Source: Takakia lepidozioides
Lineage: Eukaryota; Plantae; Bryophyta
Direction: 5' to 3'
DNA: 64,000 bases
Assembly (NCBI GenBank): GCA_030704615.1
Contig: CM060734.1
Coordinates: 63,736,001-63,800,000 of the forward strand
Shown here: positions 8,661 through 63,369 of the stretch, piece after piece
Numbering within the stretch: position 1 is the first letter of the stretch
Layout of the letters: each line of letters opens with the position of its first letter
Notes under the pieces: generated by a model
Told to the model about the DNA's origin: nothing
The model's database searches: none
The model's input: the letters and a program-made list of their open reading frames with translations, nothing else
Position numbers and translations under genes: made by a program

Positions 8661-9641
8661 ATTTTGTACTCGATTGGTGGTTCCGCGAAACTGAGCCATG
8701 TACATCCCAGAAAGTTATGCGATAGTACTTTCTAAATCTCCCTCAGCCTCCCTAAGGCACCATGGCCTGTCTGGGACAACCTGGGCGTTTACCACATCTG
8801 GACAGGTTATAACTTCCTGTGTCAAGAGCCTATGTTCATTGGTTGAGAAAAAATACTGCCACGGCGTCCACGCCGACGCAATTGTCGTTTTTCCGAGGTT
8901 TCTGCGACAGACCGGCGTCGCAGAACCAGCCAACCCCCCCCCCCCCCCCGGCAATTCCGTCGCCACATCTAGGCCCCGTGGGGCACCGAGCATCACAATC
9001 CCCTCCTAAGCGCTGTAGTGATTATACACAATATGTTGGAATTCGAATGATCAGAATGCTTCAAATTAGTCCAACATTTAGCACATCGTAGAGTATGGTA
9101 TTATCACATGCCAGTTGTACATGTTTCTCAGCAGTCCCAAATGCATGTGGCTTGATTTTACTGCAAGCGTGTGAGCTGACAGGTACGGCCCGTGAGGTAC
9201 AGCCGGAACCCCGCTCCGGCAGCCTCGTCAGCAAGCTGGACGCCCCATGTCAAATCATCCCCACCCCCCTCCAACCCCTCCACCCGCTGCCCCGCCCGCC
9301 TGCCCGGGATCTTGACCCCGCTCCACCGCTGGCCACGCGGAGATCTCCAGCCACGTGGTGGGGCCCCCCCCCTTGTCTATTGCCTGCCTGGGTGATCCCC
9401 CACCCCATATCAATCAACAGAGTATTTACCCTAAACCCTAAACCCTATAACTTTATTGGTCTGCATCACATGTTAAGATATTGCCATCACACTATGTGGC
9501 CATGGAAAAATGTCTGAAAATTTATAATAGCTCCATCCGTGCATTCTTGTGCACTTATGCAAGTCTGGATTGCAATGGATTGTGAATCTATCAAAATCTT
9601 CCATAAATCTGTAATATAACTCACTTAATGGGTGTGTACAG

Positions 9642-10375
9642 GTGGATAGAGTGAATTTGGAGATACAACAAGCAGAGCGTGATTATGACTTGAACCGTGC
9701 AACTGAGCTGAAGTACGGCAGAGAGACCCTGCAGCGGCAGCTGGAGTCTGCCGAACAGGCTTTGACAGAATACCAGAGCACTGGCAAGTCAATGCTTCGG
9801 GAAGAAGTTACTGGAAGTGATATAGCTGATATTGTGAGCAAATGGACAGGGATTCCCATCTCGGAAAAACCTTCAGATTTTTTGGCTTTGTTAAAATTAG
9901 GGCTTCCGTGACATGAATTTTCCCTCGCACGTGATTACAGGTTTTTGCCCCAGGAGGGGATATGGAATCTGTCCCCTGGCAGGCTGGCATATTTTATGGA
10001 TCTATTATTCTTAATATTGGGCAGACGATTTTCAAACTTGGGCAGCGAGCTACAATGCCGTGACAATGAAACCCTAGTGGCAACGCAGAGGAGAAACGGG
10101 CAGCCTTGAAAACGGGCAGCTTCGTTTATTACGAAAGGTAAAGCACTCGCCCTTGGACTTTCCTGGATTTTCGACCCTGCCCTCGGGACAGGCGCCTCAA
10201 ATCCAGGAAAGCCCTAGGGGGAGGGCTTTATCTCTTATGAAATTACAACAGTCTGAGAGAGAAAAACTCCTACATCTGGATGATGAACTCCATAAGCGTG
10301 TTGTTGGACAAGATCCAGCTGTGAATCCAATGGTCAAGGGCAAGACTCTCTGATCCGAATCGGCCAATTGCTAGC
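9642..10375 (+). pseudogene. clpB: ClpB/HSP100 (organellar ClpB3/4-like) single-exon fragment, interrupted and truncated
   Basis: After an AG acceptor: EIQQAERDYDLNRATELKYG...LREEVTGSDIADIVSKWTGIP | LMKLQQSEREKLLHLDDELHKRVVGQDPAV...LSDPNRPIAS; ends before the second Walker A motif. Confidence 0.85.
9857..10232. mobile_element. 376-bp non-autonomous insertion of unknown class in the ClpB fragment
   Basis: Its removal restores att cct ctt atg (I-P-L-M) in frame; subterminal 20-bp inverted repeat at 10151-10170/10199-10218; no TIRs seen. Confidence 0.65.
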
Positions 10376-27011: not shown

Positions 27012-28350
27012 ACGATACCGGCCATCCTTCAGCGCGGAGGGATTTCAAGCAATGTGGTGAGGGCACCTTCTTCTTCGACCTATTTCAGCCTGTTTTGCCT
27101 TCTCATCAGACTTAGGCTATGTTTCAATCTCTGTCTACTCAGCTGCGTCGTGGTGGTTCTCATACCGGCCATCCTTGAGCGCGGAGGGGTTTCAAGCAAT
27201 GTAGTGAGGGCACCTTCTTCTTCGACCAATTTCAGCCTGTTTTGCCTTCTCATCAGACTCAAGCCGTGTTTCACCTGCTCAGCTGCACCGTGGTGGTTCT
27301 CACAGACCAATCCGACATTACCTGACTACAGACACAAGCAACACATATAAGAGGTCCTTGTGGGTTGATGGTCGGTCAAATCCTCCATGGGTCATGACAC
27401 AAGGTCAAGGACAATGTGGTGAGGGCACCTTCTTCTTCGACCTATTTCAGCCTGTTTTTCCCTCTCATCAGACTCGGCCCTGAGATGCATATTGAATTCT
27501 GTAAGTTAGCTCATTGCAGGGTGGATTCGTGGTCGTTTGGAATGACTTTGACAAGTTACTGCCGATGTGGCAGCAGGAAAGTATCAAAAAACAGATAACA
27601 GAGATGAGGAGAAGCTGGGACAATGGAGACATAAAGGTGAATGTCCGTTGGACTACAGATAGAAGCAGATGCAATTCAGAATCGGAACTCTGTACGTAAT
27701 AAGTGGGGTTGGGGTGTTTGCTGACAACTGCAATCGCAAGGTGTGGCTTTTCTTAATGTACGATGTGAAGAAGTTTGTGCATCCTGCAAATGTGGGCTCT
27801 TGGCTCCTGTTAGTACCATGATTTGGTATTCTTATGATGTTTACAAGGTTCTCGGGAGAATCAGCTTGGTCTTAGCAGCCCGTATTTCAATCTCTGCCTG
27901 CTCAGCTGCACCGTGGTGGTTTTCACAGACCAATCCGACATTACCTGACTACAAACACAAGCAGCACACTCAAGAGGTCTTTTTGGGTTGATGGTCGGTC
28001 AAATTCTCTATGGGTTATGACACAAGGTCAAGGACAATGTGGTGAGGCACCTTCTTCTTTGACCTATTTCAGCCTGTTTTTCCCTCTCATCAGACTCGGC
28101 GCTGAGATGCATATTGAATTCTGTAAGTTAGCTTTTTGGGTGGATATTTGTGACTTTGACAAGTTACTGCCGATGTGGCAGCAGGAAAGTATCCAAAAAT
28201 AGATAACAGAGATGAGGAGAAGCTTTGGAATGAACACTTTCTGACCCCAGTCAATAGTGGGACAATGGAGACAAAAAGGTGAATGCCTTTTCGACTACAG
28301 AGAGAAGCAGATGCAATTCAGAATTGGAACTATTATAATTAGTAGGGTTG
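27012..28350 (-). repeat. Nested local duplications containing an ARM-repeat-like coding fragment
   Basis: The block encoding NRLKLVEEEGALTTLL recurs at about 27050, 27195, 27413 and 28036; 27265-27720 is duplicated at 27885-28360. Confidence 0.55.
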
Positions 28351-55605: not shown

Positions 55606-56240
55606 TTAAATAATTTTTTTTAATTTTTTAATAATAATTTTTTCCGCTCATGCTCATGCCGCTCATGAAATAGCACCCCCCTATTTCATGAGCATGAGCG
55701 GCATGAGCGGAGTACGAACACAATCGGTTTTCATGAGCAGAAGTACAAATTTTGAAAATAAAAAATATTAAAAACATTAATTTAATGCAATGTGTCAGAA
55801 AAAAAAACAGATATATTATTCATTGATTGAAGGGAAAATTGTAGTTTTGAGAGTTGTGCTCATGATATTTCGTCTTCCGCTCATGCCAATTCCCAACGAC
55901 ATGTGCAAAAGTGGCGCCGAATTTCGCGGTAATAGGGTCCGCAAGCGGAAAAAACCACGAAGTATTTCGCGGTAATAAGTCTCTCTGGCGAAAAATGGTG
56001 TCGAATTCCGCGGCTATAGGTCTCCTCATGACAGGTGTGTAAGCCCAAGATTTTGAAAATGTGGCACTGAATTTCGGTACATGGTGCCGGGGGATTGCAC
56101 AGATGTTGGACAGTTCTGGGCCATGTAACTGGAAATTCGGCGCCATTTTTCCAGACACAGGGGTACCAGTGCATGTTGGGACTTAGCCAGTTTTCGGCCC
56201 AAAATAGAGAAATTCGGCGTCATTTTCCAGAAATGGCCCC
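54178..56240. mobile_element. Two abutting TIR-type DNA element remnants with subterminal motif arrays (PIF/Harbinger-like ends)
   Basis: About 10 copies of GGAAATGCGG(T/C)/CCGCATTTCC at 54178-54725; TIR aatagcacccccc ending at 55681; palindromic junction 55644-55710; AAATTCGGCG-like motifs at 55910-56230. Confidence 0.5.
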
Positions 56241-56917
56241 ACAACTGCTTCTGTTGGATCTCAGTTTGAATGGAATATTGCCTCATTCTAGGAGTTCGTG
56301 TCGGGCAAGCTAATTTAGCCCGGACTACACGGTTCCCCCTGTCGTACGCCCGATGGTTGGAGAGAAGGGACTTGGTTGATCCTCCCTTGAGTTCATCTTG
56401 AGCGATCAGAGGACTATGGGCATGCGCAAGCCTCTGCCGACCTAACCTTCTCGTCGATGACCTTATGCGGTAATCCCTCCCATTCTTCCTTAGAGGTACG
56501 AACCTCTTTTTGAAGGTGGGGCATATAAGTTTTCCAACTAGGGGTTGAGACTTGACCCTATGTTTGTGAGTGCCTTGAGCGCATGCTTGCCCATAGTGAG
56601 CAAGATTTTTGTCGCTAAACAAGGAGAAGCAAACATAAAAAAGCTTACGGTTGGAACGAAAGTGCCTCATTCTTCAATTAGAGAACCTTATCTCGTGAGG
56701 GCGGGAGTCCTTGCATAAGACATAATAGTCTTATTGCATCCCTTTAGGCACAATAGGCGCACTTTGTATGCATTTGTCTTGATTTCCATTGCATTTGTAT
56801 TTGGGTCCGAACCGGCCCCCCTTAATTTTTACTGTGTCTCTTTCCAGTATTTTTTCTACTTTTTGTTACCTTTGCAAGCCTTTGCTAACCACCCTAAACC
56901 CTAAACTCATTTTTCCC

Positions 56918-59105
56918 ATGGCGGAACTAGCAGGTAACAAACGTCCATGTCCTAGCTTAGGCGTCGGCCCTTCTCATGCATCCGCGTCTTCTTCTTCTAG
57001 CATGGATATCTCCATTCCTCCCCCTTTGCTTGCATTTGTGCATACATCGGTCAAGGAATTCAAAAGTCTTAGGCATGAGCATGAAAAAACTTCCAAGTAC
57101 CTTCAAAAATTGCGAGTGCAATTCGAAGAAGGCACCATACCCAACTCCCTTAGAATGAGTCCTCCTAAACTTCAAATAGGAGATCCCGAGGCCCAATCTG
57201 TCCTTGATGCGAGCCTGGCCGAATGCACAACCACATATCGGATCAAGTGCTTTGAAGCACTCATCAAAGCCAAGAATCTCGACTTGCTAGCTTGACCCAC
57301 AAGCTCGAGCAATCGAAACCGGTCTTTGAGACTCGCCTCTCGGATTTGATTTCGCCTTTACGATCCTTAAATTTGATAGGTGACAAATCTAAGTCTTCCA
57401 TTGAGTCGTGGCATCTTCATCTTAGCAATCTCTTTGTTACTCATGTAGATGCATTTCTTATTCACAAACAACTTTCCGACGTCAGCAAGGCCGCGGCTAT
57501 CGCCGCTCCCAACGTTGCTCGGGAAGGTGCTATGGAAGAAGCGGAGACCCTCCTTGTGGAACCGTCCATTGCTACACTCGTGAAACGCGAGGTGGTCAAG
57601 GAAGTCCTCAAGGAGGTGAAGAAGGTGGTGAACTCCATCCAGGTGAAACCCAGAAGCTTGGGACCAAACCGGCTAGTAAGCCTAAGACGAATCTTGGCGG
57701 AAAGTCGGGAAACGGCAAACAGCAAAAAGGTATCCGGGTCTCCACCCGTTTTGTTGCGTCACCTACCTCTTTCAACAAGAGGTCAGGCCCGAACCGCACA
57801 ACCGGTTCTGGTACGGGAGGCCGAAAACCTTCAGTGAGGGTCAACGGTAAACCGGCCACGACGAAGGGTTCGACGACGACGACAACGAAGACGAAGCAGC
57901 CATACGTACCTCCTCACAGGCGTGGGGGCGCACGAGGAGTCTCTTCTGGTACCCGCTCGTAGACCCGAAGACTTACACTTTGTTGCTCTTTGCTAGGAAG
58001 ACTCCCTCCCAAGTGGAATGCAGGGTCACCAACAGTGCTATCCAAAACTATAGCAAGAGGGTTCTCTCCTTTGCGGAGCGACAACTCCTGGGCCTTGGTC
58101 TCAATTACATTCCTCGTCCTCTTTCCCCTTCCCGATCTTCAATCATCACCGAATTCAACAATTTTGCTCGAAGCTTGAGGTTGCGAACGTTCTTCTCCGG
58201 CAAAGACAATGACGAGGTTCATCTTTGGCGCGTTCCAAATCCATCATTCAATCCGCCAGTGGAATCTCAACCGCTCAAGGCCATCATTCGAGAAGGTAAT
58301 GATCTTTTGTCTAGCCGTTTGGATCGAATCGCCCGCAATGCACGACCTTGTCTGCCGAGACACTTGAGACTTGCTCTCAAAAGATTGAGGACGGATCCGG
58401 ACCTTGTCATCAAGCCGGACGACAAAAATCTTGGTCTTGTGCTTATGGACAAGTCTTGGTACATGCAAGAGGCGATGCGGCAACTCTCAGACACCGAAGT
58501 TTATCGTCCCGTGGATTCCGTACCGTGGGAAGAACTTTGGTCGAGGTTGGAGGTGCTAGCTTGCCATCCAATCTACAGGTTTGTGATCTCCACCAAAGAA
58601 TGGAATTACATCCGCCAACGCCCTCGGTCGTCCATGGACTTTCGAGCTTGTGCTTTGTACTTCATTCCGAAGGTGCACAAACCCGTGCTTGTTGGAAGAC
58701 CCATTTGTTCCTACAACAACTACATCTTCGAGCATGCTTCAATTTGGCTCCATCACCAACTCCTTCCGGTACTTCTCAAGGAACCCACTCATTTGGTTGA
58801 TTCTCTCACACTTCTTCGAGAGGTTTCCCAACTCGAGGTCCCCTCGCATGCTCTTCTTTTTACGTTTGACGTGGAATCTTTATATCCCAGCATCATCACC
58901 GAGCTCGGCTTGTATGAGCTCGAATGTGCTATTGGAGGTAATTTCACCAAACACAAAAAAGACCTGATCATGACCCTCGCTGGATTAGTCTTGAAACACC
59001 ATTACCTTGAGTTCAATGGTAGTTTTTGGCACCAAATTCGCGGGACCGCAATGGGGAGCAATTTTGCAGTTGTTTATGCTTGTTTGTTCCTTTGTCGGTT
59101 GGAGA
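56918..59105 (+). mobile_element. Penelope-like element copy A: helical/basic ORF1 (56918-57962, two 1-nt shifts) overlapping an RT ORF that is truncated after motif B'
   Basis: GTIPNSLR N-terminal motif; RT LGLGLNYIP, VIKPDDKNLGLVLMD, YFIPKVHKP..GRPICS, FTFDVESLYPSI, QIRGTAMGSNFAVVYA; no GIY-YIG seen. Confidence 0.88.
57707..57756 (+). promoter_or_regulatory. Candidate -1 programmed ribosomal frameshift signal
   Basis: G GGA AAC heptamer, 6-nt spacer, then a stem-loop; the -1 frame is the RT frame. Confidence 0.6.
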
Positions 59106-59660
59106 TGTACATGGAGTTTAGGGTTTAGGGTTTACAAAAGAGTGGAAACAAATACATGTAGCAGTGCAACAGAGTCCGAACCGCGAATGCACCAGGTGCA
59201 TTAGTAGCAAAGTGCAAACAAGTTTTTAGGGAGGCCAGTTATGGACACCTTAGAAAACTTGTAGAAATATCTAGCCTGTGAATCAAAACTAAAAGAATCG
59301 ATCCTGAGACACAAAAAAACTAGAATAGAACAGAGTGGAAGTGATGTTGCAACGTTCTAAAATGCAAATGCAAAGATATGCAAGAGGCAAGTGTGTGTGA
59401 TGAAACTAATTCACTGTAAGGACAGGAGAATATTAACCTATTTCTAAGAAAGAGAATAGACACACTAAAGAACAGTCTTAGAAGGAGATCTAACATGCAA
59501 CACTCGAAAAGGAGTTTAAAACATGCACTACAATAGACACAAAGCAAATGAATGCAATGAACTATGCAGAAGATCTAATCTAAAACTCAACAACAACAAC
59601 AACGCCGCCAATGAGACAAAGAGACAAGAACACAAGATGCAGCAAAACGAATCTCTATGA

Positions 59661-59704
59661 TCCCCAAACTAGTTTCGCTCAGCGCGTGAGCTCATCAGTG
59701 GGAA
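59661..59704 (-). ncRNA. Minimal type-I hammerhead ribozyme
   Basis: Minus strand: TTCCCA CTGATGA GCTCA cgcgc TGAGC GAAA C ta G TT / TGGGGA; complete core, 6-bp stem I, 5-bp stem II, palindromic short stem III, GUU cleavage triplet. Confidence 0.82.
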
Positions 59705-59744
59705 AGAGAAGGAAAAGAGATACAATGTGCACCCCTCACCCCGC

Positions 59745-59751
59745 TTATATA
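59745..59751 (-). promoter_or_regulatory. TATA box upstream of the hammerhead
   Basis: TATATAA on the minus strand, followed by a pyrimidine-rich tract and the ribozyme about 40 nt downstream. Confidence 0.5.
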
Positions 59752-61190
59752 CTGCGGAAAGTGAACTTGTCTCGGGGGGGGGGAGAGAGAAAAAAATACC
59801 TAATGGATGGAAAACATCCAAAATTGTCTTGGCTGGAGAGATATCCAACGCATGAAAATCTAGATGAAAAACATCCTAATGTTCTCTCCAAAATGGATAA
59901 TCATCCAAACTAGAAGCTAACTACATGTCTCAAATACAACTAGCCTCTACATTTGTAACATAGCACGAACTAGATAGGAACGCAAGTTCCGTGCCCTCTT
60001 CCAACATACCATAGGTCTGTCAAAGGACGCTAACTGCGGAACTTTCAAAAAGCCCTCATGAAGTTTAGGGTTTAGGACTCCCTCAAAGCTTAGAGCTTGA
60101 GTATAACGCGAATGCTCAAGTTTCAGAACCAAGGGGGACCGCTTGCCCGTCAACTTACGAGTGGACTCTGAAATCAACAGTGTAGCACGTTGTGCATAGT
60201 TACAAAGCACAAAACACTCCAAGATAAAAGACTTTGGATAGCCTCGATCACGCAGTCGCTCATAGAACAGTTGCCTGATCTCAGAAAAACTTGCCCGTGT
60301 GCTCTCCCTCAAAGTGTAACGTCGTAATTCGCCAATGATGAATGCTCGTTTTTGGTGTCGTGGATGACACGAGGTCCATGGCAAATACTGGTATTTGTTG
60401 AGTGCCTTTTGATGACATCTTGAAGATAAAATCCCATGGTTGACAAAATCAACTCCCTTGAAGAACTGAATATCAAGAATGTCAACCGTAGACTCAGAGA
60501 TTACCCTTTGAATCCGAATTGTGGGACTAAGAGAATTGTATCCATCGAGCCAAGCCTCCAAACTTGCCCGAGATCCTGCCCAAATTCCAAATCCATCATC
60601 GATGTATCTCTTGTAGTATAGAGGCCACATGCCTCCTCCAGCACCAACCAACTCTCTTCTAAGCTGCAAAGAAAGAGACAAGCATAAACAACAGCAAAGT
60701 TGCTACCGATTGCCGTGCCTCGGATCTGATGCCAATAGCTTGAACCAAATTGAAGATAGTTATTCTCCAACACCATGCGAGAAAGACTCAGGACGAATCT
60801 TTCAAACTGAGGTGACTTGAACTTGTCGGCAATCATCTCCTTCAATCGTCGAAGCCCGTCCCCAGTAGGAATGCTAGGATACAATGACTCCACATCAAAG
60901 GTGAACAAAAGCACGTCGCCAGGAAATTGCCTATCCGACAGATCTTTCAACAAAGATATAGAATCTATCAAATGGTTATCTTCCTCAAGCAGAATGGGAA
61001 ACAGATGGTGATGCAACCACTTGGATGCGTGCTCAAAAACATATCCGTTGTATGAACAAATCGGCCTCCCGACCACCACAGGCTTGTGCATTTTGGGCAC
61101 GAGATAAAACATGCAGGGTCGGTAGCCCCCTTGGGGCTTGAACGCCAAAAAGTCCCTTGTCTGCCCGTCAATCAAACCAATGGCTTTGTC

Positions 61191-62000
61191 GATTGGCATG
61201 ATGAACTCTACCCCATAAACCAATGAAAGAGGGTATGTCGAGTAGTTACCTTATGGGTTGTGCGAACTGCCTACAAGGCCGAAATTAACTTGGTGTCCCA
61301 ATCCCTTTTGTGCTCCCTGATTGTCTTGGAGAGAATGTTGCACAGGGTTTGGTTGGCGCGCTCCACCTGCCCACTCGTTTGTGGATGATAAGGGGTCGCA
61401 TTGTGATGCTTGATGGAGAATGCGTCGTTGATGAAGTGAGATCATCTGTCACTCACTATCTCTTTTGGGCATCCGAATCGGGAAATGATATATTCATAAA
61501 TGAAAGAGGCGGTTACCTTTGTGTTGGATCTCTTAACCGCTTTGGCTTCTGCCCACTTGGTCAGGTACTAAGTGGCTATAATGATGTAGCGATTTTGTCG
61601 ACTCGATGCAGGGTGCACTTCCCCTACATAGTCGATCCCCCACTTCTCAAACGGAGCAAGGGGAAGAGTGGAACTAATGACATTCCGAGCCTGTTATTTC
61701 GTTTGGCGTACCTTTGACAAGAGTCGCATTTTCGCACATGCATGTGCGCATCTTTGAACATGGAGGGTCAGTAGTATCCTACCCTCAAAGCCTTCTGCAC
61801 TGTGAGCCGCCTTGCAAAGTGTTCTCCACACATGTTATCATGGGCTGACTCTAAAATCTGGGGAACCTCCTCCGGGGTGACGCATCGGCTCAAGAGTCTA
61901 TCCAATCCCCTTCTATAAAATTGCCCTCCCACAAGAGCAAACTTCATGTTGCGCAGTCGAAGCCTACGTCGCGCATGTCGATCCAATCCTGGGGAAATTC
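61191..62000 (-). mobile_element. Degenerate non-chromovirus gypsy integrase fragment
   Basis: RCVTPEEVPQILESAH...EHFARRLTVQKALRVGYY, CDSCQR, PKEIVSD, LVYGVEFIMP; joined directly to PLE copy B. Confidence 0.8.
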
Positions 62001-63369
62001 CAGGGTGCTTAAATATTGAGCTAAGTGTTCATGGACTCGGCTCATTTTTGGTATGTCATGCATAAATGAGCTAGGCCCACTGCTATATGGTTGGAATCTC
62101 TGGATGATTTTTGGTAGGTTTCTAGGGGCAATTTATTGCAGCTGGGTACCAAAAATTGGTAAAAAGTCAAAAAAGGGCTTGGGAACTTAAAGGTTAAATA
62201 AGATAGAGGTATTTAATTCAGACCTAAAATCTTTCACGATGAGTACAAATTAATTTTGAAAATGTCCACCACCTTGACATAAAAACTTGCGTCGGTTCTA
62301 AGTCACCTAACAAAAAACTTTGAAACCTTATGATTTTTGAATCCACGGATTCTTTGCTGCATTGGAATCCACTTTTAATTTGCTAACAAAAATATACAAA
62401 AACTTGACCATTCTAATAGTAATAACTATGCCCAGTGATTAATATATCATTTATTTTTGTACGATCACCTTACTTTTGACAACAACAAAAAAATTAGGTT
62501 TCACTTCAATCACAAAATCGGAAACTATGCTCTATTTTCGAACGATTGCCATTGTGGAATACCTCACAGACGAGAGAGAGAGCGTGATACTGCATATGAG
62601 GACTCCTGCCTAAGTCGCCGAGCACAACCGCTCTCCGCCTTTGACTGGTCTGCTTGCGCTTCCCGAACAACGATCGAAACGAAAGCCATGATCAAGATCC
62701 GCATCCTCCTCCTCCATGGCCCTATGCACGGAGAGCTAGGGTTGCAAGAACCCCTATGCAATCGGAGACGGGGAATTGAGCAATAAATGCTTGGAGAGGA
62801 AATGTTGGGGTGACAGAAACGAAATACATGAAAATGTGGCGTGTGATTGCAGTGGAGAATCAAAACAAAAACAAATGAAAAACAGGAGAGGAACTCAAAG
62901 ATTGCAAGGTGGTATGGAATTGGAAAGAAGAGCACCGACTAAAAACCTTGAGGCGGAGTTTCCCTTGCAACGCAAAGACAGACATTCTCCAGTCAGCAAG
63001 TGGAGGGCCCGTTTCCTGACATGCACGAGGTGGCGGTGCCCCGTTATGAGATCTGCGGTTTGCCGGTTTAGTTGGGCTCTAAGAAAATTGAAGGGCAGCC
63101 CGCCCCTGCATGCAGCCCGCCCCTGCATGCAGCCCGGCTCCAAAATGTAAAAATCACCCAACTATTTGTGCAACTTTGTAGGTCACTATATATCAATGTC
63201 ATACATTAAATTTTTTGACTTGTACATTACTAAATAATGGTTTTCATCTTTTACTCCCTTTGTTCCAAAATAAAAAGCACTTTTGATTTCTTCATGTATT
63301 TGTACCTCTTCATATATTTGTATTCTTCACGTATTTGTATTTATTATTTTATTTTAGTTTACTGTATTG

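Follow-up and report, generated by a model that had tools for sequence, protein, structure and literature searches.

Two Penelope-like elements (PLEs) lie tail to tail in a 64,000-nucleotide stretch of the genome of the bryophyte Takakia lepidozioides (assembly GCA_030704615.1, contig CM060734.1, forward-strand positions 63,736,001 to 63,800,000; this whole stretch is the window, and positions are counted from its first letter). Copy A occupies 56296–59117 on the + strand and copy B occupies 61180–59118 on the − strand. Among retroelements, endonuclease-less PLEs are the most closely related to telomerase, and both copies carry short telomere-like tracts in their sense strands. An earlier interpretation made from the letters alone (the sequence-only reading) saw in this locus a possible fossil of a healed chromosome end. 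We moderately favour a simpler origin, break capture, in which copy B would have been copied onto a broken DNA end inside copy A; a healed chromosome end is not needed.

A within-window comparison identifies only these two reverse transcriptase (RT)-like copies, which share 54% amino-acid identity over 175 aligned positions (A 58583–59104 versus B 61175–60657). The tail-to-tail pair of diverged RTs described in the sequence-only reading is thus confirmed. The PLE blocks HKP..GRPI, FDVESLYPSI, GTAMGS and YIDD are conserved in the alignment with relatives, and, as had been noted by eye, Pfam finds no GIY-YIG nuclease in any window piece of copies A and B. With these blocks aligned and GIY-YIG not found, the two copies are assigned to the endonuclease-less PLEs, where they represent two diverged families. 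Pfam returned no match at all on the window pieces, RVT_1 included; our local copy did not report DUF8422 or HTH_animal, the families that are precomputed for the homologs.

Copy A starts with a non-coding leader (56296–56890, +), followed by a telomere-like tract and an interrupted open reading frame 1 (ORF1; 56918–57960, +), delineated from the ORF list and by comparison with a paralog, A′, and without any Pfam domain. ORF1 contains a stop at 57293–57295 and frame changes; relative to copy A, paralog A′ carries one additional nucleotide after 57269 and seven after 57648. The RT follows at 57980–59117 (+) and, judged from its ORFs, homologs, alignment and the A′ contig, comprises the N-terminal region through motif B and ends before motif C. 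The RT of copy B (59947–61180, −) is 5′-truncated and spans two overlapping frames (61175–59947, −) with a break near 60656, after which relatives have one additional nucleotide. Its ORF ends at the same point as those of the relatives, whose C-termini align with it, and hence no nuclease domain is present. Both copies are dead, given the frame-breaking differences between A and A′ at 57269 and 57648 and between B and its relatives at 60656.

The RT of copy A has 65 homologs, the named ones coming from Cryptomeria japonica, Selaginella moellendorffii and Ginkgo. Full-length homologs consist of 555–636 amino acids and carry the precomputed DUF8422 and HTH_animal families, with the nearest, RT-only relatives from these three genera measuring about 600–625 amino acids. 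Identity reaches at best 54% across complete proteins and 70% where two thirds of the protein is covered. An exhaustive, profile-free search with the C-terminal half of copy B yields 5044 relatives, the best of which stop within a few residues of the stop of copy B. When 63 relatives were run through Pfam, RVT_1 was detected in 39 and GIY-YIG in one. No GIY-YIG match by Pfam occurs in the ORF1s of relatives L010 and L004 or in eight longer relatives (the single GIY-YIG carrier lies outside these eight), and a regular-expression search for GIY-YIG words over the retrieved relative proteins finds none. Among the best matches is a Selaginella protein (P0020) with 47–51% amino-acid identity, and similarity to this protein places copies A and B in the same plant clade as the telomere-associated elements of Selaginella.

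The arrangement of this clade can be read from its better preserved members. The Selaginella relative L005 contains ORF1, RT and a 2.2-kb 3′ region, with long sense-strand (CCCTAAA)n arrays on both sides, and the 3′ region plus array recurs upstream at 98% identity; this is the published telomeric stack. Units of 4330 nt form plain head-to-tail tandems in the Cryptomeria relative L004. The 3907-nt unit of L009/L010 assembles as a circle whose ends overlap by 30 nt in each of two separate runs, the same 3937-nt contig being present in both as rotations of each other, and the 3041-nt unit of L008 likewise closes with a 141-nt end overlap. Such circular assembly indicates tandem arrays or circular forms. 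In the L008 and L009 circles the order is ORF1, RT, hammerhead ribozyme, spacer, short C-strand telomere-like tract and then the ATG of the next ORF1. The clade unit thus consists of ORF1, RT, a 3′ untranslated region (UTR) with a minimal hammerhead, a spacer and a short C-strand telomere-like tract, with a second tract inside the RT coding sequence.

All three sense-strand tracts of the Takakia locus are found where the sequence-only reading had placed them, including the identical pair, and all three are built-in parts of the elements. The 18-mer ACCCTAAACCCTAAACTC occurs exactly at 56891–56908 (+) and at 59131–59114 (−) as an inverted pair, and the 14-nt CCTAAACCCTAAAC lies inside the copy B ORF at 60076–60063 (−). 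A search of the window for a two-unit C-strand pattern with at most one mismatch gives five matches, two of which overlap within a single tract at 9429–9449; shuffled sequences give a mean of 0.01, and none of 100 shuffles reaches five. The tract at 9429–9449 has three units and is located about 190 nt upstream of an exon resembling ClpB/HSP101 (around 9640–9860). No PLE similarity is found near it and nothing links it to PLE sequence; a telo-box and the tail end of an unrecognized short element are both conceivable.

The tract before ORF1 of copy A (56891–56908, +; exact match and motif search) consists of 16 telomeric nucleotides plus TC and ends 9 nt before the ATG. Equivalent tracts are 12 nt long and 8 nt from the ATG in L009, and 10 nt long and touching the ATG in L008, while a degenerate tract lies 17 nt before the ORF1 ATG in the Cryptomeria relative L004; L001 has no telomere-like tract before ORF1. 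Paralog A′, which is 98% identical to copy A, also has the tract, though with 3 nt missing at 56907, which means that the family does not carry the TC extension as a fixed feature. Because the same placement is seen in the tandem and circular units of relatives and in A′, the tract is the 3′ end of a preceding partial unit, a family feature and not a mark of this locus. By its position, the copy A leader corresponds to the spacer downstream of the hammerhead in that preceding unit's 3′ part, in a pseudo-long terminal repeat (pseudo-LTR)-like manner. We also considered the copy A leader and the copy B spacer as homologous pseudo-LTRs, but they share no significant similarity, and a motif search finds no hammerhead in the leader.

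At the 3′ end of copy B, motif search and helix pairing identify a predicted minimal type-I hammerhead ribozyme (59660–59702, −) with cleavage expected after U59667. It is composed of a CUGAUGA box, a 5-bp helix II, GAAA and a two-base-pair helix III inside the palindrome ACUAGU. Five relatives from other organisms (L001, L003, L004, L006 and L009) have the same motif at 250–425 nt past the RT stop. Rfam reports no hammerhead between 54000 and 64000 at E values up to 1, only four weak unrelated matches, which is not surprising for the minimal form. Since the hammerhead is placed as in the relatives, 59106–59946 is the 3′ UTR of copy B itself, and the possibility raised earlier that 59106–59925 belongs to an unrelated LTR family can be discarded.

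The spacer between the predicted cleavage site and the tract (59135–59666, −) was followed in public contigs. In some of these, about 29 telomere-like letters connect 59123 with 59667, a position no more than one base from the predicted cleavage point; the segment running from that site to the tract is therefore also found elsewhere as a stacked non-coding unit. The putative cleavage is supported only by copies that begin at the predicted site. Another contig places a B-type tail about 1.8 kb upstream of an RT, the distance expected for a tract, ORF1 and the RT N-terminus, in the same layout as copy A. In two further contigs a B-type tail with a shorter tract directly abuts non-telomeric sequence. 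The tract likewise terminates other B-type 3′ ends found in public contigs, with a variable number of units.

Three side observations concern these 3′ regions and the hammerhead motif. Between the RT stop and the hammerhead, the copy B 3′ UTR contains a homopolymer and short-repeat stretch (59773–59790) with small insertions and deletions between public runs. The 3′ UTR of L003 carries TTAGGG-like bits in the sense strand upstream of its hammerhead (L003 1380–1470), of another repeat type and orientation than the tracts described here. Four copies of a 27-mer containing CTGATGAG and GAAA are located at 27083–28093 (−); this is probably not a hammerhead, as the segment between the two words is not self-complementary.

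The junction between the two copies was defined by comparing contigs of four public runs with window positions 56200–61400. Paralog A′, best represented by a 4053-nt contig of run X3 and by matching contigs in runs X1 and X5, matches 56296–59117 at about 98% and then runs 227 nt further, matching the copy B RT at 60420–60329 in the orientation of A. The letters of A′ past 59117 are in frame and lead to the conserved stretch before YIDD (motif C). As A′ continues as RT at this point, T59117 is the last letter of copy A itself, which puts the breakpoint at 59117|59118. The stop of the copy A RT had previously been put at 59105; the stop that actually closes the frame, at 59126–59128, is created by the telomeric tract. 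This tract, the 3′ terminus of copy B, covers 59117–59134 (−; motif search and public contigs) with 2.6 units, T59117 being common with A. The GAG of the 18-mer belongs to copy A, such that the identity of the two 18-mers is made up of 14 nt of tract and 4 nt of A. The overlap between the end of A and the B template is 1 nt with certainty and may be up to 4 nt. Two other explanations of the junction were considered and rejected. The tract and the following CATG do not form the start of a downstream ORF1, because A′ shows these letters to belong to the RT of A, and twin priming is ruled out by the priming end of B lying in the middle against A and not against the flank.

Copy A and A′ (in three runs) have a common left boundary at exactly 56296 and different upstream flanks, which moves the start of the block from the 56280 proposed earlier. 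The left flank (56200–56296) is a very high-copy repeat in the public runs, and its other copies diverge exactly at 56296. On the right, a decayed Ty3/gypsy integrase fragment (61181–62010, −), recognized from its translation with integrase core motifs and from bridging contigs, adjoins the 5′ end of copy B and lies outside the PLE. It is only about 830 nt long. Positions 61181–61223 encode the LVYGVEF..P.. motif of Ty3/gypsy integrase, which is fused to the copy B RT in the ORF list, and other B-like copies cease to match at 61180; the RT of copy B accordingly begins near 61180. Two contigs cross from B into the gypsy fragment, one of 2029 nt that matches exactly and one from another sample at 99% identity. 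No telomeric letters are present at 61180/61181 or at 56296, and thus neither 5′ end is capped.

From these boundaries a sequence of events can be proposed. Copy A would have been broken or nicked after T59117, inside its RT, and the exposed 3′ end of the + strand would have primed reverse transcription of family-B RNA at its terminal tract, with a possible overlap of 1–4 nt. The complementary DNA (cDNA) of B would then have been extended to about 61180 and joined to another DNA end inside the gypsy integrase fragment, with loss of the intervening DNA. LINE-1 retrotransposition that proceeds without endonuclease at breaks offers a parallel: cDNA is started on an existing 3′ end with little or no homology, the product is 5′-truncated and target DNA is lost. 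Priming on a pre-existing 3′ end, 5′ truncation and loss of target DNA would be common to both. The Takakia locus differs in that it involves another class of retroelement, of which the template end bears a telomere-like tract that would bias it towards G-strand ends.

Several points weigh against break capture. The A|B junction is seen in the window assembly only: of the contigs listed for the four public runs, none crosses 59117/59118, and the short-read contigs all stop somewhere from 59117 to 59123. Paralog A′ does not retain the CTC portion of the 18-mer match, and the microhomology at the junction is putative. The join to the gypsy fragment would fit one-step repair as well as a two-step history. 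Finally, several other B-type ends, matching the window only from 59123 onwards, carry one unit fewer than the junction tract, and telomerase could therefore have added a unit before priming.

This additional unit also speaks for the healed chromosome end of the sequence-only reading, in which copy A would have been broken, telomerase would have added a short TTTAGGG seed to which B RNA annealed and from which it was copied outward, and the end would later have become internal through fusion or rearrangement. The geometry agrees with this, since on the + strand A is followed by G-strand units and these by antisense B, beginning with its 3′ end, and the Selaginella relatives do lie between telomeric arrays. 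Part of that interpretation is retained here: the 3′ end of copy B sits on a break in copy A in the geometry expected for priming by a + strand 3′ end. Healing itself we consider unlikely. The tract of about 18 nt comprises only some 2.6 units, close to the 10–16 nt measured for tracts borne by the element family, and the tracts before ORF1 and inside the RT ORF are inherited family features that are uninformative about the locus. The truncated 5′ end of copy B is uncapped and abuts the gypsy fragment, while terminal copies of endonuclease-deficient PLEs are, in the summary given in PMC8557442, typically telomere-capped at their 5′ ends, and an extra event is required to make the end internal. 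A terminal location with telomere-capped 5′ ends is found in Selaginella L005 and not here, where the flanks are the gypsy fragment and the high-copy repeat. A tract near family length, an uncapped B 5′ end and a cDNA joined to a broken repeat are better explained by capture at an internal, two-ended break than by healing of a chromosome terminus.

There is a similarly small chance that the locus was put together at the DNA level, by end joining or ectopic recombination of existing A, B and gypsy fragments without any reverse transcription on site. The region is indeed a mosaic of truncated repeats, with the high-copy repeat left of 56296 and the short gypsy fragment, and both PLE copies are decayed. 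The joint, however, falls exactly at the 3′-terminal tract of copy B, the place where priming is expected and an unlikely position for a random break, and reverse transcription on the 3′ end of A is thereby strongly favoured over a random DNA-level join. An inversion between the two 18-mer arms, a specific version of this scenario, is excluded because A′ has the same order of leader, tract and ORF1. A false assembly join at the short telomere-like repeat would account for the missing public contig across 59117/59118, but it is very improbable, as a repeat of 18 nt falls far below the length that could mislead a long-read assembly, a break in the short-read graph is expected where A′ and other B-type ends share the flanking words, and the adjacent B|gypsy junction is borne out by an exactly matching contig.

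The internal tract of the RT gene (60063–60076, −) was analysed by codon comparison. It encodes LNPKL and lies 129 nt before the stop; in the relatives LNP is followed by Lys, Thr or Glu. Across nine lineages (the window and L002–L009), with a mean pairwise amino-acid identity of 44%, the Leu codon is CTA and the Asn codon AAC in all nine, and the Pro codon is CCT in eight of the nine. The Leu of LNP is the only codon-invariant position among 19 conserved six-fold degenerate columns, for which the mean share of the commonest codon is 0.43, and the Asn is the only one among 25 conserved two-fold columns. The tract is always located about 123–147 nt before the stop. In L008 and L009 the protein differs at this site while the DNA is still telomere-unit-like, which argues for selection on the nucleic acid. 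The codon conservation suggests an RNA- or DNA-level role that overlaps the coding sequence.

One further feature lies elsewhere in the window. Between 54160 and 54740 at least seven copies of a palindromic 27–44-nt repeat (GGAAATGCGG..CCGCATTTCC) form many hairpins, and this cluster shows a weak, sub-threshold resemblance to a plant microRNA precursor model in Rfam.

Telomere-associated, endonuclease-deficient PLEs are represented by Athena and Coprina and by elements of Selaginella (Gladyshev and Arkhipova 2007, as summarized in PMC8557442 and PMC12477314). The Takakia copies resemble these elements, as described in those summaries, in having an RT without GIY-YIG and an ORF1 upstream of the RT, short reverse-complement telomeric stretches in the sense strand at or near the 3′ end, and a hammerhead near the 3′ end. 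The RT-only relatives, the tracts and the hammerhead support the class proposed in the sequence-only reading. In contrast to the known elements, the locus is internal, its 5′ ends are uncapped, its 3′ end sits on a broken retroelement instead of a telomere, and about 540 nt separate the hammerhead from the tract downstream of it, instead of the two lying side by side. The hammerhead shares the type-I core and the very short palindromic helix III of those described in PLEs, where an architecture in which a palindromic loop caps a very short helix III is described as working in dimers (Cervera and de la Peña 2014, PMC4209133). The plant PLE hammerheads of that study, from Selaginella, are reported as canonical, whereas the one found here and those of several relatives are predicted from their motif to be of the minimal kind with a palindromic helix III. 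PLEs with an N-terminal endonuclease (Chlamys and Naiad) combine an N-terminal GIY-YIG with a CxC linker and also occur in the green lineage, including Selaginella (PMC8557442); unlike in these, neither an N-terminal GIY-YIG nor a CxC linker is found here or in close relatives.

Telomere-associated transposable elements have been called rare in plants, with Selaginella as the PLE example (PMC12477314). The clade described here reaches conifers, Ginkgo and Takakia as well, and its unit of ORF1, RT, hammerhead, spacer and tract is conserved. The telomere-like tracts may be primer-binding sites, among them the internal tract that the RT gene would have kept at the codon level over hundreds of millions of years; the codon conservation of this tract offers a small but testable indication that an RNA-level function overlaps with coding sequence. 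A relic of a healed end would, if true, show plant PLEs taking part in break or end repair. If break capture is correct, the locus would be one clean example of an endonuclease-less PLE starting on a non-telomeric broken end, and would bear on how nuclease-less elements spread inside chromosomes.

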